This document shows, one piece after another, positions 1,369 through 63,105 of a stretch of 64,000 bases of DNA (positions are counted from its first letter, which is position 1; each line of letters begins with the position of its first letter). The notes beneath the pieces are model-generated. The model saw nothing but the letters and a program-made list of their open reading frames with translations. It ran no database searches and was not told the origin of the DNA. Both the position numbers and the translations under genes were made by a program. The stretch comes from Basidiobolus meristosporus CBS 931.73 (taxonomy: Eukaryota > Fungi > Basidiobolomycota), in assembly GCA_002104905.1 (NCBI GenBank), contig MCFE01000208.1:1-64000 (forward strand), given 5' to 3'.

Positions 1369-4300
1369 ATGTCTATCATCACAACTACTAAACGCCATAG
1401 CATATTGAGTAATATCGGTAATTCCACCGGAGGTTCTGACATTGAGGACTCGGGCAGGAACCTAGCCCGCACCGTAACTTTAGCAGCTGCTCAAGGGCTT
1501 CCCGTGAATGATCAAGATTTACCAACTACCTCTGGCGAGCTACGACAGAGTCGCAGATACTCCGTAACTGCCTTGTATTCGATGGCAGCTGAACAAGATG
1601 TAGAGGTGGAAGATGATTTGTCCAAAGGTAAGACTTGGGTGCGTTACCATTTGTATATATATTTGTTAAACTAAGATATTGTCATCTTTCACAAGCCCAA
1701 AAGCGTTTGAGGCAACTCAAAATCAGTATCTCTACCCTATCAAAGAAAAACTTCACTCTCGAAAGAGATGTGCGATACCTAGATGGTCGCATCGCACTAT
1801 TAATCCAAAATCACATGGCTTTAGAAGAAGTGAAGGTAGGCGGTCGATAGGGTGCTGTGTTGGCTCTGCAACTCAACTCAGAAATTCCGAATATATATAT
1901 AGCAAGAGGTTTCTTCGCATCTTTACGATATTGAAGTTACAGAGGGAAGTTATCCAGATGACAGAAAGATGCAGGTAAATCCTACACAACTCGCAATGAC
2001 GACATTAAAGCCCAAAGGGATCTAGTTAACACCGATTTCTGTCTAGCAATACGGAGGGTTGTTTTTTCTTCTGCAGACCGAGCCTCGTCACATTGCCACT
2101 CTTGTTAGACTTGTGAGCTTGAGTGAAATCGACACTCTGCTGCAAACAGTCATGTTTACGTTATATGGCAATCAGTACGAATCCAGAGAGGAGCACCTGT
2201 TGTTGACCATGTTTCAGGTTTCTTCATTTACTCTGCAGCTATCAGTGAGATATCGTTATTAAGGAAATGCTTCTAGTCGGTGTTAGCCAGCCAATTCGAT
2301 AGTGCTACAGACTTTGGAGGGTTACTACGAGCTAATACGCCGGTCTCGCGAATGATGAATACATACACAAGGTAGGTTGAATGAAGGCTAACCTGGCTCT
2401 TGCGCGCATCGGTTAATCCCCACAATGTTGTATCTAGGCGCGGCCCTGGCCAGTCGTACTTGAAAAGTGTTCTCTCTGGCTGTATCAACCAAGTCATAGA
2501 AAACTCCGAGTTGAATTTGGAAATCAATCCGCTCAAAGTGTATGAGCAAATCATCTCTGACATGGAAGACAAAGCGATGGTTGTTAGTTTACCTCGAGGG
2601 ATTTCTGCTGAGGAAGCCCAAGCTAATCCCCAAGTTCAAGAAATCTTGAGACCAAGAATCGGCCAATTGATCGAGATTGCCAACACATTCTTGACAACCA
2701 TCATCAACTCTATTGAACTTGTTCCTTATGGGATTCGGTGGATTTGCAAACAAATCCGCTCTCTCACTAAGGTGTGTAGACGTGTGCTAGTATTGAGCTC
2801 AATGGTCCGAGTGCTAATCTGTTCCTCTAGCGAAAATACCCGGATGCTACCGAAATGAGTATCTGCTCGTTGATCGGTGGATTTTTCTTTCTTCGTTTCA
2901 TCAACCCAGCCATTGTTACGCCCCAGGCCTATATGCTAATTGAGCAAAACCCGTCTAGACACCCCCGACGAACGTTAACTCTGGTAAATAGCCGTCAGCT
3001 GGAGGTGGATTGAGATGCATTAATCTAAGTTGATCAACAGGTGGCAAAAATGCTTCAAAACCTTGCTAATAAGGCTTCGTATGCGAAAGAAGCGTACATG
3101 ATGTCGCTAAACCCGTTTGTAGAGGGTAACAAAGCCAGGATCAATCAATTCTTCAACTCTCTTTGCGAAGTGGGGGATTTTTACGAATCATTAGAAGTAA
3201 GCGCTTCGACATACCACTCACTTGCGGGCAGATATTCAACCTCATTTGAACACTAGATGGATCAATATATGGCGTTGTCGAAAAAGGATCTGTGCCTGAA
3301 TATTACACTAAACGAGTTATATGGCACTCATGCATTGTTGGTCAAGCACCAAGACGTTTTGGTAGGAACAAGTGCTGGATAGATATGACTGACACGTGTT
3401 GTACTGACATGGATTCTTCAGTGTCCAAACAAAAATTCCCATTTGCGCATGTCCCTCGAAGAACTCGGGAATTCCCCATCTCAAGTCCCCCGAAACGCAA
3501 ACTGCTCCATTGAGCTTCCGCTTTTTAGTCGCTGGAAGAACCCATTGACAGGTATGTGACTTGCCAGCCAAACGCTTTGTGATGCCAAAAATGCTTATTA
3601 TCGCTTGAAGATATAGAAAATTCGAGAGAAAACGGCGAAGTCATCAGTCAAAATGATATACTGTATATGGAAGCGAAATCACTTCTCGTACGAATAATCA
3701 GAAGCCTTCCACACCTTGCCTCAAAGCCGATTACATCGCTTTCCGACATCATTGATACCGCTACTGACAGTAAGGACAGCTCATTAGTGAGGAAGGGGAT
3801 TAAAGCCCAAGAGATGTTGACTGAGCTAGTTACGAACGGAGTGATCGACCCAGTAGATAACTTTGCATTGATGACTCAAGAAGTCAACCAGGTACAGTGA
3901 TATTTGACGAGCTTGGATGTGTCGCTGCTTACTCACATATATTCCTTCAGGAATTGGTACACCTGGGAAATACTCGCGATCAAGTTCTGATTGAGATGGA
4001 ATCACTTGAAGGTGTCTACAAGACCATATGCGACCATAATAACTACCTTCGAATGCAACTAGAATCATACAAGGCGTATTTACAAAACGTCCGGATGCAC
4101 TCCGGGGGAAAGAAAGAAAAGACCCACCACACCTCTGGACCCCTAAAGTTTTCCCACCATCAGCTTGAACGTGATGGTGTTATCTTTGAATGCAATGTTC
4201 CGGAGTCAAGGTTGGTTTTATTTCCCCCTCCCAAATGCACAGACTTTTCTAATACAAGCCGTACGATTTTAGAAGGAACAATATTTTCTTTAACATCGTG

Positions 4301-4614
4301 TCGCCCATCCCTGGAACTTTTGTTATATCATTACATTATAAAGGTACGTTGGACGATAGATTCTCGGGTCTTCGTATCGACATACTCACGCTAGGTTTAC
4401 AGGTCGGGAAAAGCCGATTTTGGAGATGGATCTCAAACTCGATGATCTATTGGAGAAGGTACGTGCTACAGTGGTTTTGTCCTCTCCACAGGCCGAACTA
4501 ACCTTGCGCTCATATTAGCAACAAGATAATGTCCAACTGCTAGATCTTGAATACGTTCAACTGAACGTTGTTAGACTGCTTCATCTCTTAAACAAGTATT
4601 TCAACAAACGATAA
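1369..4614 (+). CDS. gap1: Ras GTPase-activating protein, S. pombe Gap1/Sar1-like (RasGAP + RasGAP_C); multi-exon
   Basis: Spliced reading gives [10 protein letters not shown]...[25 protein letters not shown]...[20 protein letters not shown]...[19 protein letters not shown]...[10 protein letters not shown]...[16 protein letters not shown] (RasGAP FLR signature)...KMLQNLANK...[17 protein letters not shown]. Many GT-AG introns join the fragment ORFs 1294-1674, 2059-2262, 2400-2858, 3041-3256, 3667-3900 and 3897-4394. Confidence 0.92.
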
Positions 4615-5349: not shown

Positions 5350-5733
5350 ATGAAACAATTCGCATTCGTCGCTTTGGTCATTGCTGCCTTTGGCTTTAAT
5401 GAAGTAGCTTCAAGTCCGTTCTTCTTCGGGAAGGGTATTTTCGGCGGAGGTGGTGGCGGCGGTGGTAACGAAGGCGGAGGAGGAGGTGGAAGTGGAGGTG
5501 GTGGTGGTGGTACCAGAGTTGTGTATTGTCCAGGTCCTGAATGCCCATTCAACAATAATGGATATCCTGGTGGCTCGTATGGTCCAGGTGTTACTGTCTT
5601 TAACAACAATGGTGGTGGTGGTGGAAACAGCGGCAATGGTGGTGGTAGTGGTGGTGGTGGTAGCGGTGGTGGTAGTTCAAATACTGTTGATGGCGATCCT
5701 ATTGTCTCTTACCTCATGAGCCCCCACACGTAG
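5350..5733 (+). CDS. Secreted glycine-rich protein G1 (127 aa, intronless)
   Basis: ATG 5350 gives a signal-peptide-like MKQFAFVALVIAAFGFNEVASS, then PFFFGKG, poly-Gly, a TRVVYCPGPECP two-Cys motif and Gly/Asn/Ser runs. AATAAA elements lie downstream. Confidence 0.85.
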   Translation: MKQFAFVALVIAAFGFNEVASSPFFFGKGIFGGGGGGGGNEGGGGGGSGGGGGGTRVVYCPGPECPFNNNGYPGGSYGPGVTVFNNNGGGGGNSGNGGGSGGGGSGGGSSNTVDGDPIVSYLMSPHT

Positions 5734-6124
5734 GAGCATGTTGCTCTATTACTATACAAGCTATCTTTGGTGACAAATACAATAAAATCCTATTGAATAG
5801 TGAAGAATAAACCACCATTGTTTCTTTATGTTTAAGCTAGGATAGCTATTTGAAAAAAATGGGCCTTAATATGAAGGATCACAAGATAAGTTGAATAACT
5901 GGTATTTTTCAATTGCACTGCGATATATTCGTATAGGGAAAGACCGGGAATTGCATGGAATCACAACTGTCCGTTACATCACCAGAATGCCTGTCTGGCT
6001 GCAGAGAATTTTGAAACACCGTCATATATCTCCTGATATTTACATTTTTTTCGTCATTGTGTCAGAAATTTACAAGGGATGAAACATTGGCGTGACTGTT
6101 GGAAAATGCTCGCATATGTTCACC

Positions 6125-6131
6125 TATAAAA
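6125..6131 (+). promoter_or_regulatory. TATA box of G2
   Basis: TATAAAA 105 nt upstream of ATG 6230; equivalent spacing in G3 (101 nt) and G4 (105 nt). Confidence 0.6.
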
Positions 6132-6229
6132 ATGTACTTAAGAGACAATGTCTCGATACTCGTGGACACGCCACTAGCTCCTCCTTCGCCTTTTCCGCCC
6201 ACCTTACCAAACGCCCGCTACTAGGTATA

Positions 6230-6925
6230 ATGAAGAGTCTTATCTGCTTAGTAATTGGTGCGACAGCCCTGAACCTTGTCTCTGCTATTCCTAATCCGGA
6301 GCCTATCTTTGGCCTCTTTGGACACAAGGGTGGTCTTTTTGGTGGCGGCGGCGGTGGGGGTGGTGATGGAGGTGGCAATGGGAATGGTAATGGTGGTGGT
6401 GATGGTGGTGGTGGTGGTGGACAGACAATTGTTGTAGTCAATGGTTGTGGTCCAGGAGGACGCGGTAAATGCCCAGGTGGATGGTCAGGAGGATTTGGCG
6501 GATGGAACGGAGGTCCAGGTGGTGGCTTTGGGGGTCCCGGTGGTGGCTTTGGTGGCCCTGGTGGTGGCTTTGGAGGTCCCGGTGGTGGCTTTGGGGGTTC
6601 AGGGGGTCGTGGAGGAGGACCAGGGGGTCCTGGTGGTGGCTTTGGGGGTTCAGGGGGTCGTGGAGGAGGACCAGGGGGTCCTGGTGGTGGCTTTGGGGGT
6701 TCAGGGGGTCGTGGAGGAGGACCAGGGGGTTCCGGTAGTGGCTTTGGGGGTCCAGGGGGTCCTGATGGTGGCTATGGCGGTCCCGGTGGCCCTGGTGGAA
6801 GTTCTGGCGGGGATCCCAGTGGACCACCTACTGGGGGCTCGGATGGATCGGGCGGAGGGCCTGCTAACACCAGTCCAATGACAAATGATTACGGCAAGGG
6901 TGATTCTGCTACAATTCCATGGTAA
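6230..6925 (+). CDS. Secreted glycine-rich protein G2 (231 aa, intronless)
   Basis: Signal peptide MKSLICLVIGATALNLVSA, then IPNPEP, IFGLFGHK, poly-Gly, TIVVVNGCGPGGRGKCP, GGFGGPG repeats, ending DYGKGDSATIPW*. Confidence 0.9.
   Translation: MKSLICLVIGATALNLVSAIPNPEPIFGLFGHKGGLFGGGGGGGGDGGGNGNGNGGGDGGGGGGQTIVVVNGCGPGGRGKCPGGWSGGFGGWNGGPGGGFGGPGGGFGGPGGGFGGPGGGFGGSGGRGGGPGGPGGGFGGSGGRGGGPGGPGGGFGGSGGRGGGPGGSGSGFGGPGGPDGGYGGPGGPGGSSGGDPSGPPTGGSDGSGGGPANTSPMTNDYGKGDSATIPW
6518..6733 (+). repeat. Coding tandem repeats in G2: 3 x 21 bp (GGFGGPG) followed by 3 x 51 bp (GGFGGSGGRGGGPGGPG)
   Basis: The 51-bp unit ggtggtggctttgggggttcagggggtcgtggaggaggaccagggggtcct is exact at 6581 and 6632 and near-exact at 6683. 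Confidence 0.9.
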
Positions 6926-7424
6926 ACTCGCATCCAGGGATCTTATCCGATGTTCAGGAATATAGTGGTATTCTACTGTCAGTGTGATATTCATCATTTC
7001 TGTAGTAATACAGCAGTGTCTGGCATGTCAGTATCTTACATTTCCTCTCCCTTTGCTTTGTTCAATAAACTCAAATGCAGCAATATTGATATTTTAAATT
7101 TGTCTTTACGCTGCTGTAATGTCTATAATTCAGTTCTTTCTGAGTGGGTTCATAAAGCCACGTGCTACTGTTGGAATTCTAAGCAACTACTGAAACATAT
7201 ATGTGATGCGATAGCGAATTATTGCCTAGGTTAGCATATCCTTGAAAGCAAAAAATCATGGCAATCCGAGAGATTTAGTGTCAATCAACATCAATCTCTA
7301 TTCATTTGTTTCATCCTTGATTGTACGTCATTTTGAAACGATGTCACATAGTGCACTAATATGCATCAACGTAGCCTAAAGGGATGACACAAACCATGTT
7401 TGGAAACGTGACCCAAATGCTGTC

Positions 7425-7431
7425 TATAAAT
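7425..7431 (+). promoter_or_regulatory. TATA box of G3
   Basis: TATAAAT 101 nt upstream of ATG 7526. Confidence 0.6.
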
Positions 7432-7525
7432 ATAGAGTAGCTAGACATGAGTAAGTCACTCGTGGACCTTCCACTATTTCATCCTCTCCTTCCATTCACC
7501 CTACCGACACCAGCTACTAGGTATA

Positions 7526-7948
7526 ATGAAGAGCCTTATCTGCTTAGTGATTGGTGCTACAGCTTTGACCTTGGCTTCTGCTGCCCCTAATCCTGAGCCT
7601 ATCTTCGAGCTGTTTGGTAAGGGGGGAGGAGGAGGTGACGCTACTCCTCCTCCTCCTCCTCCTCCTCCTAACCCAACCATTGTAGTAGTAAACGGTTGTG
7701 GTCCAGGTGGACGTGGCAGATGTCCAGGTGGATGGAGAGGAGGATACGGTGGATGGAACGGCGGTGGCTATGGTGGATGGAACGGTGGCTATGGTGGATG
7801 GAATGGCGGCTCTGGTGGATGGAATGGCGGCTCTGGTGGATGGAATGGCGGCTCTGGTGGATGGAGTGGTGGCTATGGCGGATGGAATGGTGGCGGCCCT
7901 GGTGGTTATGACGATTATGGCAAAGGTGGTCACGGAGTAGCCTGGTAA
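7526..7948 (+). CDS. Secreted glycine-rich protein G3 (140 aa, intronless), paralog of G2
   Basis: MKSLICLVIGATALTLASA-APNPEP-IFELFGK, poly-Gly, Pro8, TIVVVNGCGPGGRGRCP, GGWNGG(Y/S) repeats, ending DDYGKGGHGVAW*. It shares gctactaggtataATGaagag start context with G2. Confidence 0.9.
   Translation: MKSLICLVIGATALTLASAAPNPEPIFELFGKGGGGGDATPPPPPPPPNPTIVVVNGCGPGGRGRCPGGWRGGYGGWNGGGYGGWNGGYGGWNGGSGGWNGGSGGWNGGSGGWSGGYGGWNGGGPGGYDDYGKGGHGVAW
7772..7894 (+). repeat. Coding 21-bp tandem repeat in G3 (GGWNGGS/Y, about 6 units)
   Basis: ggtggatggaatggcggctct is exact at 7793, 7814 and 7835, with variant units on each side. Confidence 0.9.
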
Positions 7949-8380
7949 ACTGATCTCAGCTCAACTCTACTGCTCCTTTCTTTGCATTGGGTCCCTCTTA
8001 ACCACAAAGAGTCAATCACGCAGTAAAGACAGAAATTACTCAGTTCTCTGGGTTTCCTGTATTATTGATTTGAAATGCAATAAACCATTGTTATGGAAGA
8101 TTTGGGTTTTTGAAATTATATATTTTCAATACTGCTTAAAAATATCTGATGATGGAATAGAAAGCAAGCATTCAGCTATGGGCCTATTACCGTCTCTTCC
8201 ATGATACAAATTAACATGTAACGCAACCGTAAATAGAAGGGAATGAATCTCTGTTATTTCAATTCGTAAAATGTCTATCCATAGCTGATATCTCTAGAGA
8301 CACATTTGGCACAATCTGTGACATCTTTAAACAAATGAAACGTATTTGCACACGTTTTCAAACACCGATAGGCGAGTATC

Positions 8381-8387
8381 TATATAA
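8381..8387 (+). promoter_or_regulatory. TATA box of G4
   Basis: TATATAA 105 nt upstream of ATG 8486. Confidence 0.55.
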
Positions 8388-8485
8388 GGACACCTCTTGT
8401 GGTCGAGAAATATGTTCGTGAACCTCCCAACATCTTCTTCTTCACATCCCCTTCCATTTGCACCACAAAGGACAAGCTACACGGT

Positions 8486-8776
8486 ATGATGAAGAGTTTT
8501 CTCTGCTTAATAATTGGTGTGGCTACCCTGAACCTCACTCTGGGAGCACCAAGCCCAAACCCAATGTATTTTGGTAATGATGAGGACGCCATTGGAAAAT
8601 GGGATTATGATAGTCCTGGTGGGTTCTATGGGGGTGGAGTAGAGGGTTGGTATGGAAGTGGACCAGGAGGATGGTATCGAGGTGACTCAACAGGATGGCA
8701 TGGAGGTGGCTTGGGCGATTGGGATGATGCTTGGAGAGGATATGGTGGTGGCCCAGAGGCGTTTTATGGTTTATAA
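8486..8776 (+). CDS. Secreted Gly/Trp/Tyr/Asp-rich protein G4 (96 aa, intronless), divergent paralog of G2/G3
   Basis: MMKSFLCLIIGVATLNLTLG-APSPNP-MYFG, then ~8-residue xGW(Y/H)GxG units. The signal peptide is clearly homologous to G2/G3. Confidence 0.85.
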   Translation: MMKSFLCLIIGVATLNLTLGAPSPNPMYFGNDEDAIGKWDYDSPGGFYGGGVEGWYGSGPGGWYRGDSTGWHGGGLGDWDDAWRGYGGGPEAFYGL

Positions 8777-9975
8777 ACACAGCTACCTGTTTGAGTACTT
8801 CACCTGCCCAGTAGAGCAATTTATACTTATTGTAATGTCACTCGAAAATAAAGTACTCATTGTTAGTAACATCAAAAGAAACCAATGCTATCATTAGAAA
8901 CATATGTAATCTATATAGTAATCCACTTTGGGACCTCAATATGGCATTCTAATTTAATATATTTAAAATATTTCAGCACAACAGAGTATATGAGCTGCAT
9001 CAGATTAAATATCAATATTCTGAAGCTACAAGGCTCAAATTTTATATAAAATTCATTGGTACGTCTGTGTAGATCACTTCATCCTTGTTATCGTTTCAGT
9101 AAAGGATATTCACAATCTCATATAACTTCACCACGTTATACCCTCATATATCATTTTCTATTTGATCATCTTCAAACCTAAATCTTACAACATATGGGGT
9201 AAATGCGAGAAGTCAGATCATGAAACATCATCTAGAGGATTTTACAAGCAACTTCAAGTACCTTTCAGAGAAGATAATTTCCCCAGATTAGTATTTTAAC
9301 TCAAAAACCGATAATGACAAAGAGGGTACTAATAATTTGGTGAAATTGGTACTTGATAAGAAAATTTTCGTATTTGTATGTAATTACATTTACATCTAAG
9401 CTCAGATATTTGTACAAGTTGTTAGTGTATATCTCGAGCTATAAGCACATCTAAAATTTATCAATTCTGAATAATCAGTGAACGGATCTCAAAAATAGTT
9501 CAAATTATTCAATGACCCCAGATTCCACAAATCTCTATACTCCTTGATAACACACTTGATTTTACAGTTTTGTATAGCTCCACAACTATCACGGCCATAT
9601 TTCAACGCAAAACTTCTGTAAGTGGAATCCCACTTCCACTCCTATATCACTAAATAATCTCCAGGCACCAATTTTATGTGCTTCAGGCTATATATGGCTA
9701 TTGCTGTCTTGAAAAGTACAAATGCTGCGGATCAAATTGGTGAGCCAAATGGAATCCGGGTAGTCTGACATTATACTCGCAACAGCTAACTCATTTTCTG
9801 GGAAAACAATAATAGGATACATGTAGAAATCAGTAATACAGCAACCCACCTAAAGTTGATGATTGCATATTTTGTGAAGTGGTTGGGATTCTACTCAGCC
9901 TGAAGATCGTAATATTTCCAACGAATTTGAAGAATAATCAAGCACCTCTTAACCATTAAACCGACAAATCTCAAC

Positions 9976-30981: not shown

Positions 30982-31686
30982 TTAACCAAGGAAAGAGAGA
31001 CCCTTTTTTAGAATGCTATACCCGTAGCCCCCAAGTCTTCTGAAGAACCCAGGCCTAGGCTTGTCTTCCTTTGGCGGGTCATAGCTTGAGGGTAGTTGAT
31101 ATGTGTAATCGTTAATATATGTGTGATTTTGAGGGATGTAGATGATTGGGTTGTTTCTCCAATTCATAAACTTATATTCCTCCTCTTCTGATGGACCCCC
31201 ATACCCTGCAGGGAACGGCTGCGGTTTTTGGGGCGGTATGAAATACCCACCACCTGGATAGCCCCCATTAGGCCCTGGGTAGCCACCGTTTGGTCCAGGA
31301 TATCCACCATTAGGGCCTGGATAACCGCCATTAGGTCCCGGAGGTCCCGGGTACCCGCGGCCTGGTCCCGGATAGCCACCATTAGGACCTGGATAGCCAC
31401 GGTTTGGTCCTGGATAACCACGGTTTGGTCCCGGATAGCCACCATTAGGCCCCGGGTATCCATTCGGAGCTGGATATCCACCAACTAGCGGAACATTGTA
31501 AGGGTTGAACCCATTCCCTTTTGCGTAACCAGGCTTGTTCACTGGACCTAAATAACCGGGCTGACCGTTCATTTGGAAAGTCTCTCCGCCAAGACCATAT
31601 CTTGGAATGCCATAGGGTCCGTCGGCATCCGACATACCCAACAGAACAATAAGGCCAATAAGGAAGCTAATCTTCTCCAGGAACAT
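30982..31686 (-). CDS. Secreted Gly/Pro/Tyr repeat protein G5 (234 aa as a single exon)
   Basis: Signal peptide MFLEKISFLIGLIVLLGMSDA, about 10 (G/R)GYPGPN heptads, and an acidic then basic tail. A short 3' intron replacing the last codon cannot be excluded. Confidence 0.85.
   Translation of the reverse strand: MFLEKISFLIGLIVLLGMSDADGPYGIPRYGLGGETFQMNGQPGYLGPVNKPGYAKGNGFNPYNVPLVGGYPAPNGYPGPNGGYPGPNRGYPGPNRGYPGPNGGYPGPGRGYPGPPGPNGGYPGPNGGYPGPNGGYPGPNGGYPGGGYFIPPQKPQPFPAGYGGPSEEEEYKFMNWRNNPIIYIPQNHTYINDYTYQLPSSYDPPKEDKPRPGFFRRLGGYGYSILKKGLSFLG
31245..31482 (-). repeat. Coding 21-bp repeat array in G5 (GGYPGPN/RGYPGPN)
   Basis: Repeated ccgggaccaaaccgtggttat-type units with synonymous variation. 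Confidence 0.85.
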
Positions 31687-34639: not shown

Positions 34640-35974
34640 ATGCCTGAAGTTATCTCCATTCACGTCGGCCAAGCCGGTGTTCAAATTGGTAATTCTTGCT
34701 GGGAGCTATACTGTTTGGAGCATGGCATACAGCCGGATGGCTTCAAGAATGACGCTGCCGTCGAGAATTCTTGCAATACGTTCTTCTCTGAAACCGGTTC
34801 GGGAAAATATGTTCCCCGCACTGTGTTTGTGGATCTTGAACCTACCGTGGTAGATGAGGTACGCACAGGCACTTATCGCGACCTGTTTCACCCGGAGTTT
34901 CTAATTACTGGCAAAGAGGACGCGGCCAACAATTACGCTCGTGGGCATTATACGATCGGTAAGGAAGTCATCGATAGCGTGTGCGACAAGGTTAGGAAAC
35001 TGGCAGATAATTGCTCTGGCCTTCAGGGCTTCATGGTGTTCCACTCATTTGGTGGAGGAACAGGGTCTGGCTTCGGGGCACTATTGATGGAGCGGTTGTC
35101 CACCGACTTCGGGAAAAAATCCAAACTGGAGTTTTCAATCTATCCCGCTCCGCAGGTTTCTACTTCTTGTGTTGAGCCCTACAATTCGGTTTTGACCACC
35201 CACACCACTCTGGAGCATTCGGATTGTTCATTCATGGTTGACAACGAGGCTATATACGATATCTGCCGTCGCAACTTGGACATCGAGCGCCCAACCTACA
35301 GCAATTTGAACCGAATCATTGCTCAGGTGGTATCTTCCATCACCGCCTCGCTTCGTTTTGAGGGATCTCTTAATGTGGACTTGGCAGAGTTCCAAACAAA
35401 TCTGGTCCCATATCCCCGAATCCACTTTCCACTAATCACTTACGCTCCAATAATCTCAGCAACCCGCGCCTACCATGAGCAATTATCTGTGTCTGAGATC
35501 ACCACGGCTTGCTTCGAGCCGAACAATGTAATGGTGAAATGTGATCCACGCCATGGCAAATACATGGCCTGCTGTCTCCTGTATCGTGGAGATGTTGTTC
35601 CCAAAGATGTTAATGCTGCCATCTCAGCCATCAAGTCAAAGCGCACCATTCAGTTTGTAGACTGGTGTCCTACCGGCTTCAAAGTCGGTATCAACGGCCA
35701 GCCACCCACGGCCATACCCGATGGAGATTTGGCCAAAGTCAACCGTGCTGTATGCATGCTGAGTAACACCACCGCCATTTCGGAGGCATGGTCCAGACTA
35801 GATCACAAGTTCGATCTGATGTATTCCAAGCGGGCCTTTGTTCATTGGTATGTTGGCGAAGGCATGGAGGAGGGTGAGTTCAGTGAAGCTCGCGAAGACC
35901 TTGCAGCTTTGGAAAGGGATTATGAGGAGGTAGGCATGGAGTTTGCAGATGAGGAGGAGGTTGATGAATATTAG
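34640..35974 (+). CDS. tubA: Alpha-tubulin, intronless and divergent (444 aa)
   Basis: [78 protein letters not shown] and an acidic tail ending EY. TATATAA at 34582. Confidence 0.97.
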
Positions 35975-43724: not shown

Positions 43725-45687
43725 CGTGCGAATATTTACCAACCAATAATCAAAGAAAATTAAGATTTAAGGGATGTCTACTCACAAGAAGCAACGAAGT
43801 GGACTAAATGGATAAAGGAACCAGCTCAGTCAAGTAAATATTTATAGGCTGGAGAAAGTCGGAGCATCAATGCCAATACGCAATAAATGCGTGCTCAGCT
43901 CAGAATGTCAAGGAGTATCATGATTCAGACGAAATTTTCTCACGATGCTAATGACAGTGGAATAAATCATCTCACCAATAGGAATAATCTAGTACGAAGA
44001 TTGCAATGGATTTATGGAACTTGCCCTCCACAACAAAAATCACACGAAAGAAAAACTAGTACATCAGAGGCACAGCTAGACATGGGAAGAAAGGAGTATG
44101 ATGCACAGAAACACTGATTATGATTTTTGTGGGCAGTGAAACTTACGAACCTATCCGCCGAATTACCACAAACCCTCCCAACTGGACTTGAGAGTGCTAG
44201 GATGGTGGATGCAGTATTGAAATCGCATAATAACAAGAAGCAATCCTCTCCACATAATTACAAGCTTCCCCATAAAATTTCTATATATCAAATAAAGCTG
44301 GATGTAAATACCGTGCCAGAAGAAATCAACCGAGTACAATATAGTAGATTCACCTGATCCAACGGGTGTCACCATTCAGTTAACCAGTTGAAAAATATTG
44401 CTTACCAAAATCAATCTGCCCACGGAGTTGCTCGAACAGCAACCGGCCCATTACACGTGATTTTCAAGTACGTCAACTCCTGTCTGTTTGAAAGCAACAT
44501 GTTGTAGCACAACACAAAAAGATTTCAACAGGAGTGATTGGACAGGTTGAACCAAGGAATATAATAGTCATGCTAAGGAGGGGGCTTTACAAATTTGTGT
44601 ATACGCGATGATTCATGGTATATATATATGTGCTGGGCTCCAAACTTCGTGTTATACCCAACACTTGGGCTAAATGCCGAAAAATGTGTTAACACACCAT
44701 CTCTATAGTTATGCTAAACCCACGGATCTGCTATCTGACACGTTTCCGTAACATAAAAGAAGAATGTGTATTACCCTACGGGTCGTTGAAGTGTCGATAG
44801 CGCTGAGTAATTCTTAGTAATTGCTGACAATTATCCATATTTCTTTAGGAAAGCGATCATCATGACTCTTTTTGCTTTAAAGAGTCCACTTCTCGGTGAT
44901 CTTGTTAGCAGAAGTGGCTCGTAGCTAATGTTTGTTGGGCTTCAAGCATATCAGTCGTATCAGTGTTCTCTAAAGAGATAAGATATACCCCTTTTCTAAA
45001 TCGGAGTCATTTAAACTTTGTGCTCCAATTTGGATATAGGCCGCTTATAATCATGCAAATTGATACTCTATTAGTGTTCTGCGTTATATAAAAGGCGTGA
45101 ATGTCGATGATTGGTAATAACATGACTCATCTTCTTCCTGATTAATGCGTCCTCTCTACTTTAGGAAATTGTCTCAAGAGCTCTGCTCATCGTCGAATAA
45201 TTTTATAGGGAAGCATGGACCGCAATCTCATGACTGTCAGTCTCCTGATTTCTGAGGAGACAGGTGTAGTAGGTAATATGAGCGTTGCTGAACACATGAT
45301 AGCAATGATGCCTAATCTTGGAGTAGGTGTTGGAACTGACTTGGAGTTTGTACAAAATATCCGTTACCAGCAACAGGGGCAAGGGGCTGGTTGTTTGCAT
45401 AAGCAGCGTATCCGAGATTTGATCAACAGGCGTTTATACAATAATGAAACCGAGTTCGGTTTGATGGCTACATCGATCCTAATCAACTTTTAGTCGATGT
45501 TTAATTTTGCTCAAAGTGATTAAAAATTTCCATGAATCTCGAACGAAAAAAACCCAGTCCCATCGCCCACGAATAAGCATTGATTAAAAGATTTCTGCAA
45601 CTGCGGTGTGGATAAAATTTTTTAGAAACTTCATATTGAGTTTTGTCTGTAGCCACTTTATTCCTGTGTACTAGAGCGGAGTTCACG

Positions 45688-47705
45688 ATGTCTTTCTTGA
45701 GACTTACACCTAGGCATCTATTGAGAACTCGGTTCGCCTCAATCAATATTCACTCCCGCTTGTATACGCAAGTCAGAGATACAAATATTGCCGTGAAAGC
45801 TGTAAATTCTTCTGTTCCATCCAATGTTGACGAAGTGCCCATCAGTGAAGAAGAACTCTCGGAGGTTTACGAGTCTCTGAATCAACCCTTACCAAAACCT
45901 CGGAGTGTCGCAACCAAAATTAGCCCCAAGTTTTTGGATGAGCTCGGTGTAACGTATCTCGATACTCGCTCCTTGAATGATACAGAAGCCGAGGAAGCAA
46001 TTACTCTGAAGAATGAGAGCTCGGTTTTGGAGCTTAATTTGAAGCGCTTCAATCAGGTTATATATGCCAACGCCCTAGCTAAGCGACCGAAGGAAGCTGA
46101 GGAGGCCTTTGCCCTGCTCAAAGAATCCAATATCCAGCCTGACGTCCGCACTTTCAACCATCTTATGGATGCATATGCTAATGTCAATCAACTCGAAAAG
46201 GTGGTTAAAACCTTCAAGCTTATGGAGGAGTTTAACATCGAGCCTAGTATCCATTCGTACGGAACTTTGATCAAGGCTTATACTCGGTCAAACCGAGTAT
46301 ACGACGCATTTAAAGTTTACGACGCTATGAAGCTCAAGAATATCGTCCCATCTCAGCCTATATTCACTACTTTGATCAGTGGTTGCATCAAAGACAAGAA
46401 CCTTACTCGTGCCTGGCGTACTTTTGATCATATGCGCTTGGAAATCTGCCGCCCAGATGAGGTGTCGTACTCACTCATGATCCATGCTTGTGCACAAAAC
46501 CAGGAAGTCGAGCGTGCCCTAAATCTATTTGACGAAATGGCAGCTGCAGGCCTTTATCCAACTGATGTCACTTTCAATAGCTTGATCAATGCTTGTGCCA
46601 AGCGCGAGGATTACTACAATGAGGGCTTTGAGTTGCTGGAGCAAATGCAAGAGCAGGGATTCAAGCCGGATATCTACACCTTCAACTCTTTGATATTTGC
46701 ATGCTCAAAGAAAAATGATCTAAGCAGGGCCCGTCTTCTCTTTAGGGATATGATCAAGTCTGGTGACGACTTTTTGAAGCCGAATGAAATTACATACACC
46801 AATCTCATGTGGGTATATGCCTCGTATAAGCCACCTAACCGTCCCAGCGGTTATAAGGCTTTGAATGGCTCGGAAGTTGAGGGGAAACAATCCCTTGAAG
46901 TGGTGGAGGATACTTATCCACTTCTTTCTCACGAGCCGACGAACAAGACTGAGTTCCTACAAGAGGTGGATAACATTTTCAATTATGCCGTCGAGACCGC
47001 CAGCCATCGGAAAGAGTCTGTTTCACTCCGTTTAGTCAACAGCTACTTGGCTCTTTTTGTCAATAAGCGTGAGGTCGACAGAGCTATTGACGTCTATAAT
47101 AATCTGCTACCTAAGCTTGACCTTGAACCTAATGGCTGGACATACAAATCAATGCTACAACTCTGTGACCGAGAGCGTCGCCTGGACACTGGCAAAGAAG
47201 TCTGGGAACGAATGTCTAAATGGAGCAGGTCTCTCGAAGAAACAAGCACCAAGCGAGGTCGTGAGCGGGAAATGGAGCGTGTGTTCCAAGGCAGAAACCC
47301 TCCCGAAGAATATGCATGCTACAGATACATGATTAGTGCATACGCAAGGTATATCTCTATATTTCTCCATCAATCTCAAGCAGTATCTAACTTCAGTTCC
47401 TTTCAAGATGCAACGATGTCGATTCTGCATTGGAGCTCCTAAACGAGTTGGCACACAACTCGATAACTGGACACAGACACCGACCAAGACTTCCGGACTT
47501 CCAACTCCTTTATACCAGATGCGTAGAGTTAGAGGATAACGTTTCGAAGGTCAAGTTGATCGAACTTTGCCCCAATGGTAAGGACAATGTCTCTCGCACC
47601 AAGGATGAGCTACGTAAGAAATGGGCTGGGATGAAGAAGCCTTGGGATATCAGTGATAAGAAGAGACATCAGCTAGTCGGTGCATACAAGGGCAAGTTTG
47701 AATAG
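45688..47705 (+). CDS. Mitochondrial pentatricopeptide-repeat (PPR) protein, Ccm1-like; 2 exons
   Basis: Presequence MSFLRLTPRHLLRTRFAS; at least 7 tandem 35-aa PPRs (e.g. TFNHLMDAYANVNQLEKVVKTFKLMEEFNIEPS, TFNSLINACAKR, TFNSLIFACSKK). One intron near 47350-47409. Confidence 0.88.
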
Positions 47706-59142: not shown

Positions 59143-62100
59143 CAAGCTGTCACTCTCTGCAATGTCTACTACTGCTATTACTGGAATTTTTCCCTCTGCT
59201 GAAAAGTTGGATGGATCCAACTACCAAGTGTGGAAGGTGAAGATGACGATGCTGCTACAAGAAAGAGGCCTTTGGGATATTGTCATGGGAGAAGAATGCC
59301 CTCCTAAAAATGTGGGAGAGGAAGCCTTAAAGTAACAGAAGAAAGAACAAAGTGCCTTTAACTGCATTTGCCTTAATGTCAAGGACAAATTGCTAATTCA
59401 ATGCTCAAGAGCAAAAACGGCAAAGAATGCCTGGAAAGCATTAGAAGACACCTACCAGTCATGTTCAGCTGCCAAGAAGATGTATCTGAGACAAAAATTC
59501 TTTACTACAAAGATGCTGCCAGGAGAAGAAATGAAATATCTAATTGACAGAATTACCCTGCTGGTAGATGAGATGGAATCTGTGGGCGTACCAACTACTG
59601 ATGAGGATGTGATAGTTACCATCCTGAATAGCCTGACAGACAAGTTTCAGGGCCTTTTATCAGCCCTAGAGTCCAGAACTGAAGATTTGACCTTAAATTA
59701 CGTATATGGAAGGCTCCTGGATGAAGAATTAAGAAAATCAAGCGCCAATAAGAAGGAAGAAGAAAATGCTTTAATAAGCAATGATAACCAACAAAGGAGG
59801 TACCCAAGACCCTACACAGGCAACAGCAACCTGCTTTGTAACTACTGCAAAAGGAAAGGACACACATCAGACCGGTGTCTCAAAAAGAAAGATAATCAGC
59901 AAAAGAAGCCTGAATATGGAAATGCTGAAACAACTGAAGATAGACTATTCATATCTGCACTAAATATGACCGCAAACAAGGACTCTCAGATGTGGTATAT
60001 TGACTCTGGAGCATCTCAACACTTTACACACCAAAAAGAACTTTTTACCCAATATCAAGAAATTCCAATTAAGAAGGTTTTCATGGGTGACAATAGAACA
60101 CTTGATGCAGTGGGAGAAGGAACTATCCAAGTAAACCTTAGAAGCAGTGAAGGAAGCCATACACTGACCTTTAAAGAAGTACTCTATGTACCAGAAATAG
60201 CCAAGAACCTACTCTTTGTAAACAAAGCCATAGCAGAAGGACTCAGTTTCAGTTTTGACAATTCTGGATGCAGGATCATGGATCAAAATGGTGCCCATAT
60301 TGCTTTGGGCATCAGAGATCAGAATCTATACAAGTTGACTTATATTCCATCATATCTGGAAGCCAATATAAGTAACTTAAATGAAGAATCACCAATGCAT
60401 TGGCACAGGAGATTTGGGCACATCAATTTTGATTATTTGCACAAAATGATCAAAGATCAGCTAATTTCTGGAGTGAAAATCAATCCCCCAACTAATTTGG
60501 AGCACTGTGAAGCCTGCATATATGGGAAACAAGCCAGACAACCGTTCAAGAGCTTTGGGTTAATCAAAACCAAGAAAAAATTAGATCTAATTCACTCAGA
60601 TCTGTGTGGACCTATGAAAAATTTATCCTTAGGTGGGATGAAGTATTTAATCACTTTTATTGATGATTATACAAGATACACATGGGTCTACTTCATGGAG
60701 AGAAAGGAAGAAGCTCTGTCTAAGTTCAGGGAGTTTAAAGCCATGGGGGAGAGAGAAACTGGTGAAAAAATCAACAAAATACGCTCTGACAATGGTGGAG
60801 AATATACCTCAAAACTCTTCATCCACTTCTGCAAAGTTCATGGGATAAAGCAAGAGACTACTGTACCATACTCCCCACAGCAAAATGGAGTAGCAGAACA
60901 AGCTAACAGATCAATAACAGATATGGCAAGATCTATGATCCATGATCAAAAATTATCCTATGATTTTTGGGCGGAATCAGTTGCCACTGCTGTATACCTT
61001 AAAAATAGGAGTTATAACAGAATACTTTGTGATTCTACTCCATTTGAAGCATGGCATGGATACAGACCAAGTGCAGAACATCTAAGATTATTTGGGTGTA
61101 CAGCATATGCCAAAAAATTGGCCGGAAATTGGTCAAAATTTTAGCCAAAAAGTATAAAATGCATATTTTTGGGTTACTGCAATGAGAGTAAGGCATACAG
61201 ACTCTACAATACCAAAGCAAAGAAGCTGATCAAGTCCAGGGATGTGTTATTTGATGAAAATTCAAAATTTTCACAAAAAATGACATCAGATGATGACAAA
61301 AATTTGATCTCAAGTCCACCAATTGTCAGAATTGAATCAGAGCAAAACAATGAAATTTTTTTCACTCCAGAGGACTCTACAACCGTGGTTCAGCCTGAAT
61401 TAGTGCCCAAGAATATCCCCAAAGTGATCATTCCAGTATCAAATGCCTGGAGATCCAATTGGACAAGCAATAGCCCAAATTACTATATCAATGAGGGTAC
61501 AAACTTAGCCTATGCCTATTCAGTCCGTATTGATGAGCCCCAGACTGTAAAAGAGGCCCTAAATAGCCCTCAGACAAAGTTTTGGAGATCTGCAATGACT
61601 GAGGAATATCAGGCCCTAATGGAAAATCAAACTTGGAACTTGGTCAAATTACCAATCAACTAAAAATCAATTGGATGCAGATGGGTCTTCAAGACAAAAT
61701 GCAAGGCTGATGGTCCAATTGAAAGATACAAAGCAAGACTTGTAGCCAAAGGATACTCTCAAACAAAAGGACTTGACTATACTGAGACCTTTGCACCGGT
61801 AGCCAAGTTTAATTCCATCAGATTAATATTGGCTATTGCAGCCAAATATAAGTTTTTTATTCATCAAATGGATGTAAAAACTGCATTTTTGAATGGAGAA
61901 CTTGATGAGGATGTGTATATGGACCAGCCTGATGGGTTTGTTGACCTAGATAACCCCCATTTGGTCTGCAAGCTTAAAAGGTCACTATATGGTCTCAAAC
62001 AATCACCAAGAGCCTGGAATTGCAAGATAGATTCTTATTTGGAATCTTTGAGTTTCAAAAGGAGTAATGCTGACAATAGTATATACTATAAGCCAGATAG

Positions 62101-63105
62101 AGCAAATCCAGTCTTATTAGCTCTATATGTGGATGATCTTATTATAGCTGCCAATAACCTAGAAACATTGGAAGAGACTAAATCCAGCCTATCTAAGGAG
62201 TTCAAGATGTCTGATCTAGGAGAATTTAGTTACTACTTGGGGATTAAGTTCTCCATAGACAGAAGTACCCACACTATCACCCTAAGCCAATCCAAGTATA
62301 TTCAAGATATACTAAAGAAGTACCAAATGGAAGACTGTAAACCAGCAGCTATCCCAATGGAGACAAACATTAACTTGGTCAAAACTCAACCAAATCAAGA
62401 GAGCTTGGTGCCATCTGAAAGCCCTGACTTTCCTTGTCAATCTATGATTGGCAGTCTGATGTATATCATGCTTGAAACACGTCCAGATATCTCTTATTCA
62501 GTAGGAGCTGTCAGTCAACATAATCAGAACTATGGATCTGATCATTTTGCAGCAGTTAAGTGGATTTTTAGATACCTAAAAGGAACTGCTGATATCTGCC
62601 TAAGATACACTTATAAGGATTCAGAACAGGATCTTGTGGGATACTCTGATGCTGATTGGGGACCAAAATTGGAAGACAGAAGATCCACCACAGGATACGC
62701 CTTTCTTTACTGTAAAGGAGCAATTTCATGGAATTCAAGAAAGCAACCAACCGTAGCACTTTCCACCACAGAGGCAGAGTATATGGCAGCCTGTGAAGCT
62801 ACAAAAGAAGCAATGTGGCCAAGAACACTTTTTACAGATTTAGGCCTATGTCAAAAAATGCCTATTACTTTATTTCAAGATAATCAAGGATGTATACAAT
62901 AGGTAGAAATCCAACTTTTCATGCTAGAACCAAGCACATAGATATTAGACATCATTTCATATGTGAAGCTATAGAGAATAACTTAGTAAGCTTAGTTTAC
63001 TGTCCTACAGATGAAATGATTGCAGACATATTCACCAAACCATTAGCTAGAGACAAGTTTGAATATCTTAGGTCAAAATTAGGACTAGTCAGTATGGACA
63101 TTTAG
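59135..63105 (+). pseudogene. Copia gag-pol polyprotein with 3 in-frame stops and 1 frameshift
   Basis: Gag LDGSNYQVWK; zinc knuckle CNYCKRKGHTSDRC; protease WYIDSGASQH; integrase WHRRFGH/CEAC, HSDLCGP, SDNGGEY, QNGVAE; [25 protein letters not shown]; RNase H YSDADW, TEAEY, KHIDIRHH, ADIFTKPL. Stops at 59333, 61142 and 61661; frameshift near 62900. Confidence 0.95.

Follow-up and report, generated by a model that had tools for sequence, protein, structure and literature searches.

The first 64,000 nucleotides of contig MCFE01000208.1 from the fungus Basidiobolus meristosporus CBS 931.73 (assembly GCA_002104905.1), referred to here as the window, contain a tandem cluster of four genes (G1–G4; positions 5350–8776, + strand) encoding glycine-rich proteins that are predicted to be exported. 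G2 and G3 are clear paralogs, evidently derived from an old tandem duplication and held under purifying selection. G4 reuses their module of 5′ untranslated region (5′UTR), signal peptide, and (X-Pro)3 run ahead of a different Gly/Trp/Tyr body, as judged from the DNA alignment, and G1 is a neighbor of similar design whose kinship to G2–G4 is unproven. X-Pro pro-pieces and secreted proteins with glycine-rich repeats are each already known kinds; this cluster of them is without detectable kin and is not in the public protein collection. For the products, we tentatively favor a role as self-associating extracellular material, that is, a matrix, coat, or adhesive.

Results

Relatedness of the four genes

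The ORF (open reading frame) read of the window gave G1 (5350–5733; 127 amino acids), G2 (6230–6925; 231 amino acids, 50% glycine), G3 (7526–7948; 140 amino acids), and G4 (8486–8776; 96 amino acids, with the second Met, at 8489, as an alternative start). All four are intronless, lie on the + strand, and contain zero internal stops, in agreement with the initial annotation; the spacers between them measure 497–600 nt.

G2 and G3 are 79% identical at the DNA level over 164 nt (blastn, E = 2e-31), a block that covers the 5′UTR, the signal peptide, and the start of the mature protein. Across 66 alignable codons, the pair gave a dS of 0.86, a dN of 0.074, and a dN/dS of 0.087, a ratio that covers the alignable blocks only and is thus biased downward. 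Both proteins carry the same set of hallmarks: the (X-Pro)3 run, an IF.LFG.K start (IFGLFGHK in G2 and IFELFGK in G3), and a TIVVVNGCGPGGRGxCP core located at 6425–6484 in G2 and 7676–7735 in G3, with TIVVVNGCGPGGRG[KR]CPGGW common to the two. Their C-terminal tails (NDYGKGDSATIPW in G2 and DDYGKGGHGVAW in G3) also share a DYGKG...W pattern, the score of which was reached by 43 of 5000 composition-preserving shuffles, so that the tail proposed in the initial annotation is retained. The comparison indicates that selection in G2 and G3 keeps the signal peptide, the (X-Pro)3 run, the IF.LFG.K start, the two-cysteine core, and the DYGKG...W tail.

Outside the coding region, the 5′UTRs of the pair are 72% identical, compared with approximately 53% for each of the 3′UTR and the −150 to −76 region. 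The 5′UTR is also better conserved than synonymous sites, 51% of which differ. In G2, the conserved 5′UTR occupies 6158–6229 (+ strand) and reads ACTCGTGGAC ... GCTACTAGGTATA ahead of the ATG; its counterparts are at 7458–7525 in G3 and, partially, at 8447–8485 in G4.

By blastn, the similarity of G4 to the pair is confined to a stretch that begins just 5′ of the ATG and extends through the signal-peptide codons, with 83% identity to G2 across 60 nt (E = 6e-13) and 77% identity to G3 across 75 nt (E = 1e-8). Composition-corrected BLASTP produced no alignment between mature G4 and G3. No DNA similarity between G1 and G2–G4 was detected by blastn, and composition-corrected BLASTP of G1 against G2 yielded an E value of 0.9 only. 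The FFFGK N terminus of G1 scored against the G2 motif no better than 664 of 5000 shuffles of G1, and its cysteine segment, TRVVYCPGPECP (5512–5547), scored against the G2 cysteine core no better than 3180 of 5000. An aromatic N-terminal motif in all four proteins and a two-cysteine motif common to G1–G3, both part of the initial annotation, are therefore not sustained for G1. The proposed family of four holds for G2, G3, and the 5′ module of G4, which are demonstrably related, but is unproven for G1, and the cluster is better described as a pair, a third gene with the same 5′ module, and a look-alike neighbor.

Predicted secretion signals and the X-Pro run

Each of the four proteins starts with M-K, followed by a hydrophobic core (Kyte-Doolittle 2.7–2.9 over 11 residues) and small residues at −3 and −1. 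In the AlphaFold model of G3, residues 2–18 form a helix, which is the sole modeled structure in that protein. Signal peptides and cleavage sites were assigned from these sequence features, the −3/−1 rule, and the G3 helix rather than from SignalP, and place the signal peptides at 6230–6286 (G2), 7526–7582 (G3), and 8486–8545 (G4); G1 has a signal-peptide-like start. The products are accordingly predicted to be of the secretory type and exported. Judged by eye, none of the four has a hydrophobic C-terminal tail of the glycosylphosphatidylinositol (GPI) type (they end in SATIPW, HGVAW, EAFYGL, and LMSPHT), so a GPI anchor is unlikely. There is one N-x-S/T site outside the signal peptide in G2, and the single site in G4 is within its signal peptide.

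Directly after the predicted cleavage sites, G2–G4 carry the three X-Pro dipeptides described in the initial annotation: VSA is followed by IP-NP-EP (6287–6304) and then IF in G2, ASA by AP-NP-EP (7583–7600) and then IF in G3, and TLG by AP-SP-NP (8546–8563) and then MY in G4. In G1, a possible cleavage after VAS would leave one S-P dipeptide (5413–5418) and then FF. The proline codons of the run are CCT/CCG/CCT in G2, CCT/CCT/CCT in G3, and CCA/CCA/CCA in G4; the X residues vary among G2, G3, and G4 (I/A/A, N/N/S, and E/E/N at the three positions), and Pro-Pro does not occur inside the run of any of them. Prolines preserved through synonymous codons next to variable X residues are the pattern expected if selection sees the alternate prolines.

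G2–G4 thus present in-register X-Pro dipeptides at the predicted signal-peptidase N terminus, as do substrates of Ste13/DPP4, and the run stops at I-F or M-Y, dipeptides that are not taken by such an aminopeptidase. The run fits either a substrate of a Ste13/DPP4-type dipeptidyl aminopeptidase or a protective N-terminal cap. In the first case, signal peptidase would expose an X-Pro-X-Pro-X-Pro N terminus, from which the aminopeptidase would strip three dipeptides before halting at the hydrophobic Ile-Phe or Met-Tyr; in the second, the run would be retained and would cap the N terminus against other aminopeptidases.

Precedents exist for runs of this form. Ste13 takes XP/XA dipeptides off fungal secretory precursors, now including those of basidiomycetes (PMC9769878). 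The alkaline extracellular protease (AEP) of Yarrowia lipolytica is described as having X-Ala/X-Pro dipeptides directly after its presequence (Matoba and Ogrydziak, 1989, as cited in PMC10095220), the same placement as in G2–G4. The classic animal case is promelittin, with its stepwise cleavage by DPP IV (Kreil, 1980, as cited in PMC5778000). These precedents, together with the three prolines conserved through synonymous changes, uphold the initial description of the run as being of dipeptidyl-aminopeptidase-substrate form. In yeast alpha-factor and the KEX2-processed repeat proteins (KEPs), X-Pro dipeptides likewise occur at an N terminus exposed by an earlier cut. The product here would differ from all of these, including the Yarrowia protease, in being a whole glycine-rich protein of 70–206 residues instead of a short peptide or an enzyme. 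Unlike KEX2-processed repeat proteins, G1–G4 also lack Kex2 dibasic sites and repeated core peptides; a KEP-type precursor was ruled out because no dibasic pair occurs in any of the four proteins.

Searches for relatives

Pfam returned zero families at E ≤ 1 for the cluster proteins, and a hidden Markov model (HMM) profile of residues 1–95 of G2 and G3 returned zero matches at E ≤ 0.001 among 1.84 billion representatives, leaving intact the initial view that these genes, with their signal-like starts, encode secreted glycine-rich proteins outside any named family. Word searches with G3, G4, and G1 gave a single low-complexity match and nothing else. Nothing was found in JGI metagenomes with protein patterns and a degenerate DNA pattern for the cysteine core, nor in a scan of prokaryotic genomes; a bacterial origin therefore has no pointer. 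Matches in the PDB were limited to engineered GGGGS linkers and one chance match to myosin. In Atlas, every nearest neighbor from the language model was an arthropod cluster, either Gly-rich or cuticle-like, with a score below 0.9. An exact copy of G3 is also listed there, perhaps simply because this same genome is included.

The exact G1–G4 sequences are absent from a collection of 15 billion proteins, and so these products, as read here, are missing from the public sets. Two other proteins of the same 128,668-bp contig, a tubulin (34640–35971) and a protein with GYPGPN repeats (30985–31686, − strand), are present in that collection.

Composition and predicted structure of the products

Glycine makes up 26–50% of the four proteins, and the predicted mature lengths are 70–206 residues. 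Counts of K+R versus D+E are 3/5 (G1), 8/8 (G2), 6/5 (G3), and 4/11 (G4), giving a net charge near zero or negative, and dibasic sites are absent from all four proteins. Two cysteines are found in each of mature G1–G3 and none in mature G4.

After its FFFGKGIF segment, G1 continues with poly-Gly, the cysteine segment, and a Gly/Asn/Ser tail. G2 contains GGPGGGF heptads and a 17-residue repeat unit between its core and its tail (6512–6798). In G3, a poly-Pro stretch precedes the cysteine core, and approximately eight GGWNGG[SY] heptads (7727–7894) precede the tail. The G4 body is acidic and Gly/Trp/Tyr-rich, with Trp or Tyr at every 8–10 residues. At the DNA level, G2 has tandem repeats with periods of 21, 51, and 102 nt (up to 96% identity), and G3 has a 21-nt repeat; all periods are multiples of three, so the repeats lengthen and shorten without shifting the frame.

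AlphaFold gave a mean pLDDT of 50 for G3 (four-sequence alignment) and 45 for G1, with no tertiary fold in either; past the signal helix, G3 was below 50, and the Atlas model of G3 had a pLDDT of 0.52. The mature proteins are thus predicted to be disordered. A polyproline-II/polyglycine bundle of the snow-flea antifreeze type was rejected for now, given the foldless AlphaFold models and a repeat period of 7 residues rather than 3. Mimicry of a GW/WG "Argonaute hook" by G3 was considered as a remote idea and found no support.

Gene signals

A TATAAA box lies 105 nt 5′ of the ATG in G2 (6125–6130) and 101 nt 5′ in G3 (7425–7430), and a TATATAAG TATA box lies 105 nt 5′ of the ATG in G4 (8381–8388), all on the + strand. 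TATAWA was not found in the 200 nt upstream of G1. All four genes are followed by an AATAAA signal, 48–139 nt past the stop codon (+ strand; 5781–5786 for G1, 7064–7069 for G2, 8079–8084 for G3, and 8847–8852 for G4). The common TATA spacing and 5′UTR sequence of G2–G4 would allow co-regulation.

An out-of-frame ATG is present on the + strand at 6148 in G2 and 7447 in G3, approximately 23 nt past the TATA box. In G2 it begins an upstream ORF (uORF) of 9 codons, and in G3 an ORF of 47 codons that overlaps the main start; it is either a conserved uORF or located just 5′ of the transcription start.

In the ORF list, five or six frames are free of stops across the glycine-coding stretches; the additional ORFs of the cluster, in other frames and on the opposite strand, are what GGN repeats usually produce. 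Pro-rich antisense ORFs on the − strand were rejected as genes; they mirror the GGN repeats and have no signal peptide and no properly placed gene signals.

Genomic setting

Directly upstream of the cluster are exons of an IQGAP-type RasGAP (2400–2858 and 3897–4394, + strand; Pfam RasGAP, E = 2e-32; RasGAP_C, E = 2e-17). The GYPGPN protein (ORF 30982–31686, − strand) is 234 amino acids long and looks secreted, with approximately ten GYPGPN(G/R) repeats, a Tyr/Pro-rich tail, and no Pfam family. Its Gly/Pro/Tyr repeats are of the resilin-like kind, and, unlike G1–G4, it is present in NCBI, UniRef, and EukProt. The tubulin gene (34640–35974, + strand) encodes a complete protein of 444 amino acids and is intronless, being a single uninterrupted ORF. 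A 599-amino-acid PPR protein, also from a single ORF (45643–47442, + strand), has very strong plant-like matches (PPR_2, E = 6e-61), which is unusual for a fungus. A copia-type LTR (long terminal repeat) retrotransposon occupies 59390–62902 (+ strand); its gag, integrase, and reverse transcriptase are split across three ORFs, so it has probably been broken by frameshifts or stops. Exons of ETF-QO and LRR matches were also found in the window. The strong PPR, copia, and LRR matches led us at first to consider a plant origin, which was set aside in favor of the fungal assignment.

Discussion

The role in extracellular material that we tentatively favor for the G1–G4 products is suggested by proteins that are long, uncharged, repeat-variable, and without cutting sites. 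The mature chains would be near neutral, with one disulfide loop in G2 and G3, and an aromatic residue recurring about every seven positions within the glycine spacers could act as a "sticker." Such chains may adhere to one another or to the wall, giving rise to a matrix, coat, or adhesive outside the cell, rather than working as killing peptides of the classic cationic type. Plant class I/II glycine-rich proteins (GRPs) and the Gly-rich cuticle and cement proteins of arthropods offer a likeness, with a signal peptide and GGX-type repeats bearing Tyr, Phe, or Trp; the resemblance is one of composition only, and neither Pfam nor HMMER connected them to G1–G4 as relatives. Several points weigh against this reading. 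The material role is itself inferred from composition, and the dN/dS of the pair is subject to the downward bias noted above. A membrane-active peptide would be just as compatible with the hydrophobic IFGLFGHK start, which only trimming would expose. No relatives or orthologs of the cluster were found across the searched sets, and the absence of the exact proteins from the 15-billion-protein collection means that there is no independent sign of their production.

That last absence, set against the presence of two other products of this contig, the GYPGPN protein and tubulin, also bears on whether some members, G1 and G4 foremost, are young or decaying ORFs without a functional protein, opened by chance in GGN-rich DNA. 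The stretches of glycine codons without stops in five or six frames, the lack of a TATA box within 200 nt of G1, and a mature G4 without an alignable relative all point the same way. Strong purifying selection on G2 and G3 is difficult to reconcile with such an origin, as is the organization of each ORF into a signal-like start, in-frame repeats, and a non-repetitive tail, all in one frame and followed by AATAAA; in G4, moreover, the (X-Pro)3 module has been kept through synonymous changes. We consider a lack of function in these members very unlikely.

A defensive role would have a dipeptidyl aminopeptidase strip the X-Pro pro-piece and release Gly/Trp/Tyr/Phe-rich antimicrobials, convergent with the NLPs and caenacins (CNCs) of Caenorhabditis, for use against competing microbes. 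A tandem cluster of small secreted proteins recalls the glycine-/tyrosine-rich nlp-29 and cnc clusters (PMC2453101), the GGYGGWNGG repeats of G3 are similar in composition, the X-Pro pro-piece follows the design reported for promelittin (Kreil, 1980, via PMC5778000), and trimming would expose a hydrophobic N terminus. The likeness to the Caenorhabditis system extends to small, Gly/aromatic-rich secreted products, tandem clustering, and fast repeat turnover (PMC2453101). However, G1–G4 are larger, near neutral or acidic, belong to another kingdom, and are not known to be inducible, and neither the G2/G3 profile search nor the word searches detected homology to nlp or cnc products. A net charge of about zero or below also sets the mature products apart from cationic antimicrobial peptides in general. 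Their near-neutral or acidic charge, mature length of 70–206 residues, predicted disorder, and lack of dibasic sites weaken the antimicrobial analogy drawn in the initial annotation, and the profile search of 1.84 billion representatives recovered zero proteins. The pro-piece, at six residues with at most one acidic, would also have little capacity for masking. A role in defense is therefore unlikely. Still less probable is the more specific idea that melittin-type X-Pro activation and caenacin-like composition arose independently in an early-diverging gut fungus and shape its bacterial neighbors.

Export could instead serve contact with a host or vector, through effectors that disturb a host process or through sticky proteins by which conidia would attach to insects or gut surfaces. 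Secreted, disordered, aromatic-rich proteins with fast-evolving repeats would suit such a role; the glycine-rich secreted protein Rbf1 is required for the host interface of Magnaporthe (PMC5053420), and Basidiobolus forms several spore types in different niches (PMC7466969). Against this, G1–G4 contain no targeting or uptake motif, and Pfam and the profile search of 1.84 billion representatives revealed no homology to adhesins or effectors. We regard host- or vector-directed effectors or spore adhesives as improbable.

The placement of the (X-Pro)3 module ahead of unrelated bodies, in G2 and G3 on the one hand and G4 on the other, may offer a simple case of N-terminal trimming or capping in an early-diverging fungus; dipeptide processing of this type has so far been documented chiefly in yeasts, with mushrooms a recent addition. 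If the genes are expressed, this lineage-restricted family would join the part of the fungal secretome that is overlooked by standard gene callers and homology searches.

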